Assembly (NCBI GenBank): GCA_016748015.1
Contig: JAAOMT010000494.1
Location: 299,179-363,178 of the forward strand
DNA: 64,000 bases
Direction: 5' to 3'
Source: Geosiphon pyriformis uo1
Lineage: Eukaryota; Fungi; Glomeromycota
Each line of letters starts with the position of its first letter. Positions within the stretch are counted from its first letter, which is position 1. Made by a program: the position numbers and the translations under genes. This document shows, piece after piece, positions 12,303 to 64,000 of this stretch. The notes below the pieces were generated by a model. That model did no database searches, was not told the origin of the DNA, and saw nothing but the letters and a program-made list of their open reading frames with translations.

Positions 12303-13472
12303 TATTCAAAACTGTGTAAAAAATAGTTAATAAATAATTTAAGAGTTTTAACATTTGAAATAAATGTAATTTATAAGAACAATTTTTTTTGCCCAAGTCA
12401 TATTCAAAAAAAAACTAATATTACTTTTGAAATCTATTTTTTTTGTTATAAATTAGTAATTCCAAAGTTGACTAGCTACTAACTTTGTTGAATTTAATTT
12501 AGTTGTCTAATTTTTGAAACCCAAAATGAATTCACTCATAATTATTTCACAAAATAACTTATAATCTTGGACAAATGCATATAATACTCTCAAAATTACA
12601 CTTGAATTACATTAGAATTGGTTGATTTAGAAACAGCCTAATAATTGGACTTTTATGAACCATGATTGAAATTGTTTATGTTCAATTTGACAAAAAAATA
12701 AAACTAAGAAATTGTTTTTTATTTCCAAATTTTAAAGTACTCATGGGTACTTTAGAATTTTCAAAGCCAGGTTTTTGTGAAATACCCCAGGTAGAATCCC
12801 ATAATTATAATTAATTATTAAATCAAAATGGCGAATTACGGTATTGTGACGTGTAAGAATAAGACACGTGAAATAACGCCATTTCTCACTTGAACAAATG
12901 GGATATTTTATACCCTTTTATCACAAAATATTAACTTCGCCACAATACTGTATTTCGCCATTTTACCTCATTTTCAAAAACAATAACTAAATAAATAAAA
13001 ATTTTTCAGCATTTAATTTAAATAAAAATTTCATAATCCAAAGAAGTTTCCTTGCATCCAATGGATAGATATTAAAAAAAATATTTTTTACGTTTATGTT
13101 AGAATTATTAAGTAGGAAAAAGATGAATTCTTCCTGCGGCCATCATCAAATAGAGTTTATTTCTCACCGCTTCCAGAAAATGGGTCTCATTTTAAATTGA
13201 AAATCACAATGAGAAACAAATACTGTACATTCGTTTATACATGTGGTTTCAGTACAAAGTACATTCCTTCCCAGACGATCTCTATCCGTTTAATAATCTC
13301 AATGACAGAATCTAACATTGTGGCGTCTAAGAATTATTCAAAGCGAATATGATTTAAAAAAAATCATACGTTAAAAATCCTTATTTATTAGCCAGGTAAA
13401 CTCTTTCAAGTCCTTCTTTCACCACACAAAATTTTTATAGTTTAATAATCCCTTTGTGTTTATTTAAAAATC
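12303..13472 (+). repeat. Upstream/promoter region duplicated at 62242-63159
   Basis: Collinear shared blocks (e.g. aagagttttaacatttgaaataaa, tagaattttcaaagccaggtttttgt, ttccttgcatccaatggatagatatt) separated by many indels. Confidence 0.9.
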
Positions 13473-16385
13473 ATGCTTTCAACATCATCAATTTCAATTG
13501 AAAATGTAACTTCACATTTCGGCTGGGTTGAAGGAGCATTCATTGTCATTAAAGAAAGTTTGAACAATTTTCCAAGCGACAATTATTCAAGAATTGCTGA
13601 CTTTGTTAAAAAATATTTTGAACGCAATCATAAAACACCCGAAGATTTATTCGATTACTTAAACAATAAAAGTTCAAGAAGTTCAATAGACTATATTTTG
13701 CTTGGCTTTTCTTTAGAACATGGGGTTGGAACTATTCCTAATTCAAAAAAAGCATTTTTAGAATTTCAGAAAGCAGCGAATTCAGAATTTTCTTTTGGAC
13801 AATTCTTCTTAGGTCGTTGTTATGATCATGGAATTGGTACTCATCCAGATCGAGGAAAAGCATTTGAATTCTATTCAAAAGCAGCCGAGATGGGAAATAC
13901 CCTTGCACAAAACACTCTTGGATGGTTTTATCTAAATGGATTAGAAACAGCGAAAAATGTGGAAAAAGCATTTAAACTCTATTCAAAAGCAGCAGAGTTG
14001 GGAGATACAATGGGACAGAACAATCTTGGATGGTGTTATCAAAATGGATGGGGAGCAACGAAAAATCCAGAAAAAGCGTTTGAACTCTATTCAAAAGCAG
14101 CAGAGGCGGGAAATATTCTTGCACAAAACAGTCTTGGATGGTGTTATCAAAATGGATTAGGAACAACGAAAAATCTGGAAAAAGCATTTGAATTTTATTC
14201 AAAAGCAGCAGAGGCGGGAAATATCCTTGCACAAAACAGTCTTGGATGGTGTTATCAAAATGGATTAGGAACAACGAAAAATCTGGAAAAAGCATTTGAA
14301 CTTTATTCAAAAGCAGCAGAGGTGGGAAATACAAATGCACAAAACAACCTTGGATGGTGTTATCAAAATGGATTAGGAACAACGAAAAATGTGGCGAAAG
14401 CATTTGAATTCTATTCAAAAGCAGTAGAGGGGGGAAGTTTAATTGCACAAATAAATCTTGAACATTGTTATCATGGTGGAAATCCATGTTCAAAAAACAA
14501 TCTTGAAACGTGTTATCGAAATAGATGGGGAACTATGGAAGACCTGGAAAAATCATTTAAACTCTATTCAAAAACAACGGAGGCGGGAAATCCAAGTACA
14601 CAATATAATCTTGGATGGTGCTATCAAAATGGATGGGGAACAACAAAAAACCTAGCAAAGGCATATGAACTCTATTTAAAAGCAGAGGGAAATAAATTAA
14701 GTTATCAAAGTGATTTTCCTGATTTGAATGGCCATAATCTCACTTTAAAGAATCAGGATAACCTGGAGCGTTTTATTTTGCAATTCCAAAGTCGAGGTTT
14801 TAAAGGTCAAGGTAATCCCAAAGGAGAATTTTTAGATTCTGAAGCTTTCTTTGATCAGCTGTCAGACGAATTCAAGTGTTATAAATGTGGTAACTTGGGT
14901 GTAATCATTAGTGGATCTCCTATATGTCCATTTTGCGATACTAATAAAAGTGATGATATCTTTGAAGCGGGGTTACCGAAATGTCCAGAATGCTATAGCA
15001 CATTAAAAGATCCACTTTGGTGTAAATTTTGTGAATATTCACGATTTTCAAAGAGTTGGGGAATATGGAGTAGTGGAAATGATAATATTGATCAGTATAT
15101 AGCAAAAACACAGGAAATTTCTGAAAGCTGCAGAGGCTGCCTGGAATGGATTTCTCCTGACGAGATTACATTTTTAGAGAAAGTGGGAATGGGAGGGTTT
15201 GGTATTGTTAAAAAAGGTAGATTGGAGAGAGGCAAAATTCTATTTTGGGACGAGAAAAATCAAAAGCATGAACGAAGCGGGGTTACGAAAGTTGCTTTGA
15301 AATTTCTCAGAAGCAGTCAAAATATAAAATATATTAATTCAGATGAGGTACTTCCTTTCAAGAAATCTATGTGATTTTTATTATTCTAATTTCTTTTTCT
15401 AACATTAGAAAACATTTTGAAATAGTTTATTGCACATCTTAAAAGTGCCTCTTGCAAATACATCCTTGAATGCTATGGAATAACCAAAGATGTTACAACC
15501 GATGAATTTATTATGGTTTTACCATTTGCGGAACATGGGGACCTTAAAGCTTTTCTCAGGATGAACGAAAACCCTCTTACTTGGAAAATGGTTCTTTGTA
15601 TTCTTTTTCAAATCGTTGGTGGCCTAAGGTTTATACATGAATCAGAACTAGTGCATGGAGACTTACATCCTGGCAATATCCTTGTTTTGAAATCAAACCC
15701 CTTAAAAGTTGTCATTGCTGACCTAGGATTCTGTCGTCCTGCCAATTACTCTCCACAATCTGGGGAGATTTATGGCGTTGTCCAATACCTAGCGCCCGAA
15801 GTTTTTACTTTATCGTGTCATACCAAATACAGCGACATTTACAGTTTTGCTATCATTTCTTGGGAAATTATTTCAGGAGAAAGACCTTGGAATGATATTA
15901 AAGATTCTATGCATGATGTAATTTCTGGAAAGCGCCCCACAATTGAAAAGCATACACCTCAATGCATTCAAGAAATGATCCAAAAAAATTGGCGTAAGGA
16001 TCTGGATTGTCGTGATACTGCAGAACAACTTCAACAAAGAATTATTGCTGCTCGCGGTAAATGTAACTTAAATGAATCTATCTCTAAAAAAAGAAGTGTT
16101 GCCTGTGATATGATAAGTTATAAAAGTCGATTAATCTTAGGAAGTCAATCAATGTCAAAGCCTATATATGGTAAGTTTTTTTATTTAGTATTATTTTAAT
16201 AGGTAAAGAACTTGTTTTGATTAAACGCCTTTTTTTCAGATTTGGAATATCCCAATAGCTCAAGTTATCTATTTAACTACTCAAGCTCTAATAAAGTTTA
16301 CTTTGATTCCTCTAAGTGTGAGGTTAAGTGTCTCCTTATCAATGATGCTGGAACTGTTGATAATATGCTAGAAAAAACTAATTAG
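13473..16385 (+). CDS. Sel1-like-repeat (SLR) + CxxC zinc-finger + TKL-type protein kinase; exons 13473-15347, 15426-16170, 16240-16385
   Basis: About 9 full and 1 truncated 36-aa repeats (AQNxLGWCYQNGxGTTKNxEKAFELYSKAAE). Then CYKC..CPFC and CPEC..WCKFC motifs, and kinase motifs GMGGFG, VALK, HGDLHPGN, DLG, APE, DIYSF. Two GT-AG introns keep frame, ending at TAG 16383-16385. Confidence 0.92.
13700..14690 (+). repeat. Intragenic 108-bp tandem array encoding Sel1 repeats
   Basis: Central units (~13975-14420) are nearly identical at nucleotide level, e.g. cttgcacaaaacagtcttggatggtgttatcaaaatggattaggaacaacgaaaaatctggaaaaagcatttgaa is repeated exactly. Confidence 0.95.
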
Positions 16386-17132
16386 GCTAGGAATTTCTTG
16401 ATAAGCAAACTTCACTGCCTTTTCTACGTTCCGACTTCTAGAATAGTAATTTATATTTTAAATTATTCGAATTTTTAAATTCATTCAGCATTAAATAAAA
16501 TTCTTAATTCTTACCTTTCGGATATCTTTTGTCCTAGCGCGTTTCTACTCTGTATTCCATTTTTGATATTATTAGCGTAAATATAAGAATTAGAGTAATT
16601 TATTAAATTCATCTATCTTTTGATGTCTTTTGTTCAGGTTGTTAAACAAATTAAAGATAAGTTTTTGAATGGTTTTATTTTTTATACTATTAAAACATTA
16701 AATAAAGAAGTACGACAAACCCAAGTTTATTTAAAAAAATGAATTTTGAAATTTAATTGATAAAACAAATACGTACGAATGTTAAAAAAGGAAAGACTAA
16801 AGTGTTTAAACGCGATAGATGTAAACTTTATATTAATGGAATTTTGCCTACGGGCATTGATCTAATCCGAGAGCCACATTTAATCAAGCCACGGTAAAAT
16901 ATTACGTAACTACATGAGAAAATGAAGAATGTAGTAATTTCCTTTAAAATTTCAGTATTTTAGAAGGGTTATACACTATAAAAACAATCTAACTTTCGAC
17001 AAAAAAAACAATAATCAAACAACACCTTTTTTAAAACTTTGTATTTTTAATCAGTTAGTCAATTATTTAGTTAGTTAGTTATGTGTTTCAAGTACATGTA
17101 GTAGTAATGAAAAAAAATTTCATCTGATCGGC

Positions 17133-17642: not shown

Positions 17643-18340
17643 TTTTCAATATATTAAAATTAGATTTGAGATAAGGTAGTATGCTAAAAGAAAAAATAAC
17701 TTACTCTTGTCTTAAATTAAAAAGAAACTTGTTACTCTTTTTTGATTGGACATCTGTATTAATAGAGAAGATTAAGTATAAATAGATTTTTTACAAATGA
17801 AAATTCTTAAGAAAGCAAATTTACCTAAATTAAAGACTAAATTATTGCAATAATTAAGCAAACATACTGTTATGAATTGAAGTAACAAGCTAATAGATAA
17901 CAAAAAAAAACAAATATTGAATAATAAAAAAGAAAATTCAACTAAATAAATCAATTGAATTTGTATAAATTCAATATGCAAAATCAGTTTTATAAATATT
18001 TCAATTACTGTTCTTTTAAAAAAATTAATAATTTGTAGTGTTAACAAAAATAAACAGCAGTCATAATTATATGTCTTATATTAATGTTTTTGTAATTTAG
18101 TAATAAATATTATTTGTACTTTTTGGTAAATATTTTTATTTAATATATTTTACAAAAGCTAACAATATACAAATCAAGAAAGAAAAAAATAAAATAGTAA
18201 GAAAAAATAAAATTATTATATTAATTTTGCTAATTAATTATTGTCTAAATTGATTAGTATAAGATACTTTTCTATAACTTTGGAAAGTTTTACTTTTATA
18301 CTTTCAAAAAAAATCAATAATCAAATTATTAATTACACTA

Positions 18341-41500: not shown

Positions 41501-43485
41501 TATAACTCATTTAATTTGAATATAGTAACTTAATGGGACCTATTGGAAGCGAAACAAAGGATGAAGAAATTTCCTATCATTACCAATATTTCTCATTCAA
41601 TGACACAACTATAATAACCCTTGTCGAGATGCCAGGTGAAGAAACATCAGGTAGAATATTTTTTCACATTTCAATTTCAACCACTGTAGATCAGCTCATA
41701 TTATTTTAATTGATCCTTCAAATTCTTTGAAAGTGTCACGAATGATTGTTCGAGATGTTACCGGGCGCTATGCTTGGGATTCTAAATTATTCTATAAAGC
41801 TCATCGAGATAACTCATTGAATAATGGAATTGAGGAGCGAAGATATGTTGGGATGACCGATCAATTGGTCATTCGACCTGATATCAAAATTACCAAATTG
41901 CCTGAGATCAAAAAAGGGTAAGTTTTTGCTGATCTTCATTTACCTATCTTTGTGAAGTTTTTTGGGGCGTTCAATCGATCGACTGATTAGTTTCAAATTT
42001 ACATTAGAGAATCTAGGAGTCTAATGCTAAATAAATTTGAATCATCACCCAAAATCACCAATACTCCTATTTCCACTGATCCGTTACCCTTACCAGTTTG
42101 GACAGTAGAAAACCAAGCAAATGACGAAAATATGCTGCAGAGGCTGCTTGAATTGTGAGATTTCTTTATTTATTCTTTTTAAAACTTTAATTATACAATT
42201 TACTTATCAATACCCCTTTTGCTTTTAGCGTCGGTGAACAGCATCCAGATTGTAGATTCTATCCTTCCGGTTCTAATCTTTCTGCTGTTGATGAGGATCC
42301 TGTTCTTTCAGTTATAGATGTCCAATTAGAGCGACATATACAAGAGGAAGCATGTTATCGTAGTGCCATGGATCCTCATGCGTGAGTTTCATCTTTTCCA
42401 AAAAAGAAAAGCCCTCCTGTCTCTAACTATTTTTCACCATGCTATTTTATCACAGAAAATCATGGTACGAATCGGTGATATTAATACGTAATAGGATCTT
42501 GAATATGCATGATCATAACAAAAGTATTGCCAAGATATCAAAGGTGCCACTTTATTCGCGTTCAACCTCTCATCTTTCACTTGGCGCTGATTTCTCGCTA
42601 TGCAGGTCATTTCTTCCAGTTTTGCCTCCAGAAGCTGAAAAACCAACAGAACCATACCAACATTGTCGATTATTTTTGGGTCACTTTGGATGGCTTAGTC
42701 CTGAAACCTTGAAAGACAATGCTATCTATTTACTAAACAAAACCCCAGCCTTATATCGTGATATACGTCTTTTAGATAAAAAGCATCCGCGTGAAGTGGT
42801 GAAAATCGCACTCTTATATGTTGCTCCTGGGCAAGAGGATGAGCAGAGTATATTGCATAATATAAATGGAAGCTCAATGTATGACGAATTTGTGGCTAGT
42901 CTTGGGTGGGAAATTGACCTTGCGACTCACCCTGGCTATATTGGTGGACTGGAACGAAACTCGACCAATGGATCGACCGCGACATATTTTTGCACTTCAA
43001 CAATTGAAATAATCTATCATGATGTGACTAAAATGCCAACCGACCCCACAGATCCGAAACAATTAAAAAAGAAACGACACATAGGGAATGATCACGTTCA
43101 CATAATATGGAATGAAAATTACCGTGAATACCAACGAAACACTATCGGGGGTGATTTTGGCAACGTTCAAATCGTAATTACCCCTTTACCAAATGAAATG
43201 TTCTCAATTGATTTATCACGTGACCAAAAAATTCCTTTATTCGGACCTTTATTAAATGGGATGGTTGTCTCTCGAAACGTGTTGGGTACTTTGGTACGAA
43301 TGACGGCAGTACAAGCCTTTCGAAATTGTTTGCACCACATAAACACCACGAATAATACAATGTATCAACATCCGTATATGGAGCGCGTTGTCGATATTAC
43401 AAAGATAACGGGACGGCACAAAAATAACAAAAGTACAACTTACGAAACATTTATGTCCCGAATTTTCGTGTCTGATGAAGAGTAG
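35519..43485 (+). CDS. RALGAPA: Ral GTPase-activating protein alpha subunit-like (tuberin/Rap-GAP family), about 20 or more exons
   Basis: C-terminal Rap-GAP domain REVVKIALLYVAPGQEDEQSIL...FVASLGWEIDLATHPGYIGGL...YHDVTKMP...KKRHIGNDHVHIIWNE. N-terminal NHPRVRSQGFNLLLLWL, and central WKKMLCALGNVNKI and YYAHFYRILLKGL blocks, are typical of RalGAP-alpha. Start placed at the MESTETVK ATG. Confidence 0.85.
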
Positions 43486-62241: not shown

Positions 62242-63159
62242 TATTCAAAATTGTGTAAAAAGAGTTAATAAATAACTTAAGAGTTTTAACATTTGAAATA
62301 AACATAATTTATTAAACAACTTTTTTGTAGTTCCAAAGTTGATTAGCTGCTAACTTTGTTGAGTTTAATTTAGTTCTCTAATTTTTGAAACCCAGAATTA
62401 ATTCACTTATAATTAATTCACAAATTTAACTTATCATCTTGGACAAATGCATTAAAATTACACTAGAATCGGTTGATTTAGAATTTTCAAAGCCAGGTTT
62501 TTGTAAAACTACGCCATTTCTCACTTGAACAAATGAGATATTTTATACCCTTTTATCACAACCCATCACAAAATATTAACTTCGCCACAATACCGTATTT
62601 CGCCAATTTACCCCCTTTTATTTCATTTTTAAAAAACATAACTAAATAAATAAAAATTTTCAGCATTTAATTTAAATAAAGATTTCATAATCCAAGGAAG
62701 TTTCCTTGCATCCAATGGATAGATATTAAAAAAATTATTTTTTACGTTTATGTTAGAATTATTTAAGTAGGAAAAGAGATTTATCAATGAATTCTTAAAA
62801 TAGTTCCTGCGGTCATCATCAAATAGAGTTTATTTCCAGAAAATGGGTCTCATTTAAAATTGAAAATAGCAATCACAATGAGAAACATATACTGTACATT
62901 CGTTTATAATTCCTTCCCAGACCATCTCTACCCGTTTAATCAATCCCAATGACAGAATCTAGCCTTATGAAGTAAGCATTTATATCAAGAATTTTTCTTT
63001 CACATTCTCGCGTTTAAGAATTATTCCAAGCGAATGTGATTTAAAAAAAATCATACGTTAAAAATCCTTATTTATTAGCCAGATAAACTCTTTCAAGTCC
63101 TTCTTTCACCACACAAAATTTTTATAGTTTAATAATCCCTTTGTGTTTATTTAAAAATC
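62242..63159 (+). repeat. Diverged duplicate of the Sel1-kinase upstream region (12303-13472)
   Basis: Collinear homology with indels. Confidence 0.9.
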
Positions 63160-64000
63160 ATGCTTTCAACATCATCAATTTCAATTGAAAATGTAACTTC
63201 ACATTTCGGCTGGGTTGAAGGAGCATTCATTGTCATTAAAGAAAATTTGAACAATTTTCCAAGCGACAATTATTCAAGAATTGCTGACTTTGTTAAAGAA
63301 TATTTTGAACGCAATCATAAAACACCCGAAGATTTATTCGATTACTTAAACAATAAAAGTTCAAGAAGTTCAATAGACTATATTTTGCTTGGCTTTTCTT
63401 TAGAACATGGGGTTGGAACTATTCCTAATTCAAAAAAAGCATTTTTAGAATTTCAGAAAGCAGCGAATTCAGAATTTTCTTTTGGACAATTCTTCTTAGG
63501 TCGTTGTTATGATCATGGAATTGGTACTCATCCAGATCGAGGAAAAGCATTTGAATTCTATTCAAAAGCAGCCGAGATGGGAAATACCCTTGCACAAAAC
63601 ACTCTTGGATGGTTTTATCTAAATGGATTAGAAACAGCGAAAAATGTGGAAAAAGCATTTAAACTCTATTCAAAAGCAGCAGAGGCGGGAAATATTCTTG
63701 CACAAAACAGTCTTGGATGGTGTTATCAAAATGGATTAGGAACAACGAAAAATCTGGAAAAAGCATTTGAATTTTATTCAAAAGCAGCAGAGGCGGGAAA
63801 TATCCTTGCACAAAACAGTCTTGGATGGTGTTATCAAAATGGATTAGGAACAACGAAAAATCTGGAAAAAGCATTTGAACTTTATTCAAAAGCAGCAGAG
63901 GTGGGAAATACAAATGCACAAAACAACCTTGGATGGTGTTATCAAAATGGATTAGGAACAACGAAAAATGTGGCGAAAGCATTTGAATTCTATTCAAAAG
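63160..64000 (+). CDS. Second Sel1-repeat kinase paralog, 5' part (runs off the window)
   Basis: ATGCTTTCAACATCATCA... is identical to 13473 onward except S->N (gaaagt->gaaaat), K->E (aaaaaa->aaagaa) and the absence of one 108-bp repeat. The kinase domain is inferred to lie beyond the window. Confidence 0.92.
   Translation, partial: MLSTSSISIENVTSHFGWVEGAFIVIKENLNNFPSDNYSRIADFVKEYFERNHKTPEDLFDYLNNKSSRSSIDYILLGFSLEHGVGTIPNSKKAFLEFQKAANSEFSFGQFFLGRCYDHGIGTHPDRGKAFEFYSKAAEMGNTLAQNTLGWFYLNGLETAKNVEKAFKLYSKAAEAGNILAQNSLGWCYQNGLGTTKNLEKAFEFYSKAAEAGNILAQNSLGWCYQNGLGTTKNLEKAFELYSKAAEVGNTNAQNNLGWCYQNGLGTTKNVAKAFEFYSK

Follow-up and report, generated by a model that had tools for sequence, protein, structure and literature searches.

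A one-unit difference between two linked Sel1-repeat kinase genes of Geosiphon pyriformis, within a gene family of varying repeat number

Introduction

What does it mean when two nearly identical genes on one fungal scaffold differ in the assembly by exactly one unit of a repeat array? The question is raised by two loci of Geosiphon pyriformis, here called copy A and copy B, which encode arrays of Sel1-like repeats and share one scaffold of the published assembly (129 Mb in 795 scaffolds, PMC9453076), at a distance of 49.7 kb and in direct orientation. The stretch of DNA analysed, hereafter the window, comprises 64,000 nucleotides (C608:299179-363178), and positions are window positions unless a scaffold coordinate is given. 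An expansion of Sel1 and tyrosine-kinase-like genes in the Glomeromycotina is documented, with the function termed unknown or 'signalling' (PMC9453076, PMC8647823, PMC6123716). Those studies count domains; in the searchable literature (most subscription journals being outside its scope), no description was found of unit turnover, groove hypervariability or inter-copy gene conversion in the Sel1-kinases of the Glomeromycotina.

Results

Gene and protein architecture

The first exon of copy A (13473..15344, plus strand, its end being approximate) encodes a cap, nine Sel1-like units, a linker with five CxxC motifs and the start of the kinase, and belongs to the database gene model P0001, while a further reading frame (15513..16199, plus strand) encodes the kinase C-lobe, matching PK_Tyr_Ser-Thr and carrying HGD, DLG and APE motifs. 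P0001 (921 aa) was used as the spliced copy A protein, and the exons were otherwise searched singly. The helical cap spans residues 17-65 of P0001, the array was matched by Pfam Sel1 (PF08238) in seven stretches with E = 6.4e-80, and the kinase, of TK/TKL type, was matched by PF07714 with E = 9.9e-33, its motifs being intact (GMGGFG at 572, VALK at 607, HGD at 702, DLG at 724 and APE at 748). No Pfam match was obtained for the linker, and a NACHT or NB-ARC (NOD/STAND) domain was absent among the Pfam matches to exon 1, exon 2 and the linker of copy A. Since no hydrophobic segment of transmembrane character was found in copy A, its protein is probably cytosolic. Copy B (63160..64000, plus strand) opens with the start codon and N-terminal helical cap, continues with its first six Sel1-like units (Pfam Sel1 E = 2.8e-57, five stretches), and is cut off at the window end, where a gap of 1011 N follows; its kinase domain falls within that gap.

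In the AlphaFold2 model of P0001, each unit of the Sel1 array folds into two antiparallel helices, helix A at unit positions 4-16 and helix B at 24-36, with pLDDT >90 over residues 70-330. By sequence match the closest solved chains are Sel1-like repeat proteins, with E. coli c5321 (4BWR) reaching E = 4.7e-81 and the Helicobacter pylori proteins HcpC (1OUV) and HcpB (1KLX) matching as well. Solved Sel1-like structures (4BWR, SEL1L, Legionella and others) share the two-helix 36-residue unit of the predicted model, but they lack both a fused kinase and arrays whose units were duplicated recently. The best protein matches came from Geosiphon pyriformis, then from Diversispora and Rhizophagus 'kinase-like' proteins with PF08238 and PF07714, and this domain combination occurs in Geosiphon, Diversispora epigaea, Rhizophagus irregularis, R. 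clarus, R. diaphanus and Funneliformis; the Sel1/TKL genes of Glomeromycotina (Rhizophagus, Diversispora, Paraglomus, Geosiphon) are like A and B in architecture, with clear homology.

Among the neighbouring frames, one between A and B (42439-43485, plus strand) encodes a Rap/Ran-GAP domain (PF02145, E = 6.3e-48), and four further open frames of the window, 183-534 aa long, had no Pfam match. Just downstream of B, on the minus strand (C608:367308-368867; locus L011, 6309-7868), lies another kinase gene that has a Cys-rich N-terminal extension of the 'WTSGN..ID' type and no Sel1 array. An antisense ORF of 173 aa (13972-14493, minus strand) was rejected as a gene, being periodic and mirroring the repeat as a mechanical by-product.

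The two copies differ by one unit

Exact global alignment of A 13473-14421 with B 63160-64000 yielded two ungapped blocks (502 and 339 nt) with one 108-nt gap, and just two substitutions over the 841 nt of B, both missense, i.e. A13558 G / B63245 A (S29N) and A13611 A / B63298 G (K47E). The gap corresponds to one Sel1 unit of A (13998..14105, plus strand), or equally to 13975-14082 after a left slide by 23 nt, because the same 23-mer, AACTCTATTCAAAAGCAGCAGAG, closes both units; standing at both unit ends in A, it occurs a single time in B (63662..63684, plus strand), at the junction where A has its extra 108-bp unit. The peptide absent from B is LGDTMGQNNLGWCYQNGWGATKNPEKAFELYSKAAE, and the reading frame is preserved. 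A preliminary description of the window had stated that B is without exactly A 13998-14105, in frame, with two missense SNPs in addition, and the exact alignment found every detail correct; the one-unit difference is confirmed at the assembly level. Non-synonymous sites make up 79% of the sites and two missense changes out of two have a chance of P = 0.63, so the two SNPs are uninformative, and a selection reading of them was rejected.

Diverged flanks and near-identical gene bodies

Homology between the A and B loci spans only ~5.5 kb, by which a large segmental duplication was rejected. The window contains zero N, and copy A, 50 kb of unrelated sequence and the 5′ part of B form one contiguous stretch; given this and the short duplicated segment, the two loci are linked and distinct. 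The 5′ flank of B (62242..63016, plus strand) is homologous to that of A (12303..13329, plus strand) with ~8.5% mismatches and many indels, amounting to 57 mismatches in 674 aligned columns plus ~440 gap columns over A 12316-13329. The left edge of the near-identical tract is formed by the ~145 bp directly upstream of the B ATG (63017..63159, plus strand; 3 mismatches in 144), and the readable part of the gene body, from ~145 bp upstream of the ATG to about A 16820, shows 3 substitutions in ~1558 nt, in contrast to the 5′ flank (Fisher P = 5.5e-27). Past B's gap the 3′ end of A (16105..16820, plus strand) reappears with 1 mismatch in ~717 nt, followed by a 3′ flank of 2-3% divergence with indels, in which homology fades near 17800, and beyond ~1.9 kb downstream the sequences are unrelated.

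At 175 synonymous sites no difference was counted between A and B versus ~15 predicted from the flank divergence, and purifying selection is therefore no explanation for the near-identity. In the simplest reading, A and B would be older duplicates, their flanks being 3-10% diverged with many indels, and ectopic gene conversion would recently have homogenised their transcribed bodies. Alternatively, the body identity may stem from a second copying event, and consensus polishing with cross-mapped reads may have contributed part of it.

Repeat number and unit relations in the family

A search of the genome with the N-terminal cap returned 150 scored matches, ~100 of them across most of the cap length, and the family, of at least 100 copies, encodes soluble proteins built from the helical cap, the Sel1 solenoid, the Cys-rich linker and the TKL kinase. 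In-frame stops or short open frames occur in about one third of the cap matches, so the family includes many pseudogenes or mis-assembled copies. Copies A and B are mutual nearest relatives, with 98% identity versus at most 75% to any other copy.

The preliminary description had called for the paralogues to be collected and their units related, and repeat number proved not to be invariant: arrays at 37 paralogous loci range from ~8 to 32 units, with successive units spaced by 36 aa in 495 of 536 cases. Among 574 clean 36-residue units taken from 38 loci, 57% have their nearest relative in their own locus versus 3% by chance; the first two units and the last one are positional orthologues across genes, and the internal units resemble their own array. 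High conservation of fungal NLR repeats has been defined as >85% amino-acid identity over at least 100 residues (PMC4986451); here at least three units are linked at >85% amino-acid identity in 27 of 38 loci, with a mean within-array identity of ~0.5-0.8. Paralogues with 94-97% identical N-termini carry 14 versus 24 units, or 18 versus 9. In copy A merely 2 units are >85% identical, its array being short and of low conservation.

A subgroup of very recent paralogues, L017 (C603), L018 (C788), L022 (C721) and L028 (C642), has N-termini that are 97% identical and internal units at least 94% identical within and between loci in non-collinear order; the arrays of all four are interrupted by assembly gaps.

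Variable positions of the Sel1 unit

Entropy is concentrated at 8 of the 36 unit positions, namely 3, 4, 5, 8, 12, 15, 18 and 24. In the AlphaFold2 model, positions 4/5, 8, 12 and 15 line up as a single stripe along helix A, with the conserved packing residues 6, 7, 10, 13 and 14 on the opposite side, and taken together the hypervariable sites occupy one helix A face and two sites at loop edges. When the L-G-x-x-Y motif was aligned with the TPR consensus at an offset of +3, unit positions 3, 4, 5, 8, 12 and 15 fell on TPR positions 34, 1, 2, 5, 9 and 12. In TPRs the concave face that binds the ligand includes positions 2, 5, 9, 12 and 34, which also rank among the most variable ones (PMC1261162), and by this motif mapping Sel1 positions 5, 8, 12, 15 and 3 would sit at the concave-face equivalents.

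Counting on 112 independent nearest-neighbour pairs gave an ω at the eight variable sites of 1.07 (κ = 1, not different from 1) to 1.46, and of 1.18 with κ = 3.3 and an A-rich neutral composition; larger, less independent pair sets gave values up to 1.8 (1.81), and the counts with transition-bias correction ranged from 1.18 to 1.81. In the IQ-TREE codon model MGK+F3X4, run on fixed FastTree topologies, ω of the eight sites was 1.26-1.42 in four random samples (2ΔlnL 3.9-8.6 versus ω = 1), with 0.40-0.43 at the remaining sites and 0.18 at 20 scaffold sites; overall unit ω was 0.56-0.98, depending on the model. From the scaffold value it follows that the arrays are under selection to fold. Recombination among units and the choice of sites with the data already in view each push towards false positives for ω >1, and the eight sites are unconstrained at the very least and probably exceed neutrality by a modest margin, the size of which depends on the model. 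The variable sites had been expected to be non-neutral and to lie on the concave ligand face; their concentration at 8 of 36 positions and on helix A agrees with this, but the ω excess is modest, down to 1.07 by the conservative count, and the face is placed by motif mapping.

These values bear directly on a non-adaptive account, according to which the indel is real and has no adaptive meaning, the family being a bloated birth-and-death family that behaves like repeated DNA and drifts by slippage, with unconstrained solvent-exposed residues as its variable sites. Such an account would accommodate the many copies that are stop-broken or short, the high overall ω and the conservative pair count, and is consistent with the equivalent positions being the most variable in TPR proteins generally (PMC1261162) and with the high-copy Sel1 and kinase genes of Rhizophagus lying in gene-sparse, methylated regions (PMC8647823). 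It sits less easily with the eight-site ω above 1 in the codon model and in the transition-bias-corrected counts, with the strong constraint on the scaffold, and with the many long open frames that remain with intact kinase motifs. We regard it as plausible, at somewhat less than an even chance.

The assembly gap in copy B

A run of 1011 N occupies C608:363179-364189, starting one base past the window end, and covers the remainder of the B Sel1 array, the Cys-rich linker and the larger part of the kinase, for which the counterpart in A is 1683 bp long; past the gap, B is readable again from the final codons of the kinase exon onward. Of 39 family loci examined, 11 have N runs of 20-2518 bases within their Sel1 arrays or next to them, and these runs look like scaffolding gaps of estimated size. 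Since the gaps appear to cluster in Sel1 arrays, repeat counts of this assembly are untrustworthy pending long-read confirmation. A protein search returned no fragment of >67% identity to the 280 residues of B, and hence no second assembly or transcript match, and an exact scan of metagenome contigs for the unit-2 pattern found no match.

The 108-bp difference might accordingly be an assembly artefact, with B truly carrying the units of A: the assembler would have entered the near-A body from B's unique flank, skipped a unit via the common unit end and stopped at the gap. The gap starts 316 nt past the junction, the N runs of variable length at family loci indicate that the assembler struggled in these arrays, short-read assemblies are known from published tests to omit or create repeats in highly conserved arrays (PMC12222747), and past the two SNPs the indel alone marks the sequence as that of B. 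Against this, the common boundary is merely 23 nt and the skipped unit is ~15% unlike its neighbours, so that a false join would require k-mers or overlaps of very small size; at the two SNPs the assembler kept B and A apart; and clean one-unit changes occur elsewhere in the family in gap-free arrays. An artefact is less likely than not, and a serious rival nonetheless. It is very improbable that A and B are two haplotypes (of nuclei or individuals) of one locus misplaced 50 kb apart by scaffolding, a reading favoured by the near-identical gene bodies and by the probably non-clonal material sequenced from this unculturable fungus, but opposed by the N-free contiguity from A to the 5′ part of B, by the indel-rich divergence of the 5′ flanks and by the unrelated sequence downstream.

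Discussion

We consider it probable that the A/B difference is a recent loss of one unit in one of two gene-converted paralogues, and we infer its direction and mechanism from sequence relations that are themselves observed. The unit missing in B differs by at least 16 of 108 nt from each other unit of the 574; as a unit with no close relative would be old and not a fresh duplicate, the change is read as a loss in B, not a gain in A. The bodies of the older A and B duplicates would recently have been equalised by ectopic gene conversion, or re-copied, and B would have dropped exactly one 108-bp unit during or after that conversion or copying. Its likely route is out-of-register pairing at the identical 23-nt unit ends, by unequal exchange, synthesis-dependent strand annealing or slippage, and a clean loss between such ends fits this route. 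In yeast, double-strand-break repair by strand annealing is well known to contract repeats.

Copy A also contains an irregular unit of 51 residues (14430-14590; P0001 residues ~328-378), which resembles a Sel1 unit with a 15-residue out-of-register partial duplication and looks like a second scar of out-of-register exchange. It is the sole low-confidence part of the predicted array, with pLDDT <50 at residues 337-353.

Functionally, the solenoid most likely serves as a binding module inside the cell, with control over the kinase. If so, loss of one unit would remove one stripe of variable groove residues and shift the register of the later units, and the family would diversify by gain and loss of units together with fast change at the groove positions.

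Among known systems, the HNWD genes of Podospora (het-e, het-d, het-r) and fungal NLRs with highly conserved WD40, ANK or TPR repeats are alike in having tandem units of 30-40 residues that change in number, with exchange within and between paralogues and variability at a few positions of the binding face (PMC4986451). Unlike these, the Sel1-kinases are without NACHT/NB-ARC and without an N-terminal death or effector domain, their output being the C-terminal kinase; their mean within-array identity is lower, and the differences seen here are between paralogues of one assembly only. The Helicobacter pylori Sel1-like (Hcp) family shares the repeat type, and lineage-specific positive selection is reported for it (PMC1941758), but the Hcp proteins are secreted and bacterial, with disulfide-bridged repeats, no kinase and no arrays of near-identical units. 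The candidate LRR/TPR receptors of Ectocarpus likewise belong to a non-canonical lineage and are reported to be fast-evolving with reshuffled repeat units (PMC3341825); each of their repeats forms its own exon and their partners are NB-ARC or ROCO, whereas the whole array lies in one exon in the Sel1-kinases.

The proposal of the preliminary description, a diversifying repeat-kinase analogue of the NLR/HET proteins, is by this comparison partly supported for the family, through its range of repeat numbers, the prevalence of nearest relatives within the own locus, the 27 loci of 38 with highly similar units, the confinement of most variability to 8 of 36 positions and a codon-model ω above 1 at the variable sites; a NOD/STAND domain is missing from the analogy. 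The A/B pair barely supports it, contributing one indel beside a gap, two uninformative SNPs and, in copy A, an array of low conservation.

A wider reading, which we offer tentatively and hold to be unlikely as a whole, is that the Sel1-TKL genes of Geosiphon, and probably those of other Glomeromycotina too, may form a kinase-coupled, non-NLR repertoire of variable intracellular receptors, in which conversion and whole-unit gain or loss recombine groove residues into new specificities; the A/B pair would then show such an event just after its occurrence. Sel1 motifs number in the thousands in the Glomeromycotina, and unusual kinases in the hundreds. Should their arrays diversify as do the repeats in the immune receptors of fungi, the arrays would become candidates for the means by which these ancient symbionts distinguish partners, endobacteria and other fungi without an NLR architecture, and the near-identical A and B, one unit apart, would be a natural matched pair for binding and kinase assays.
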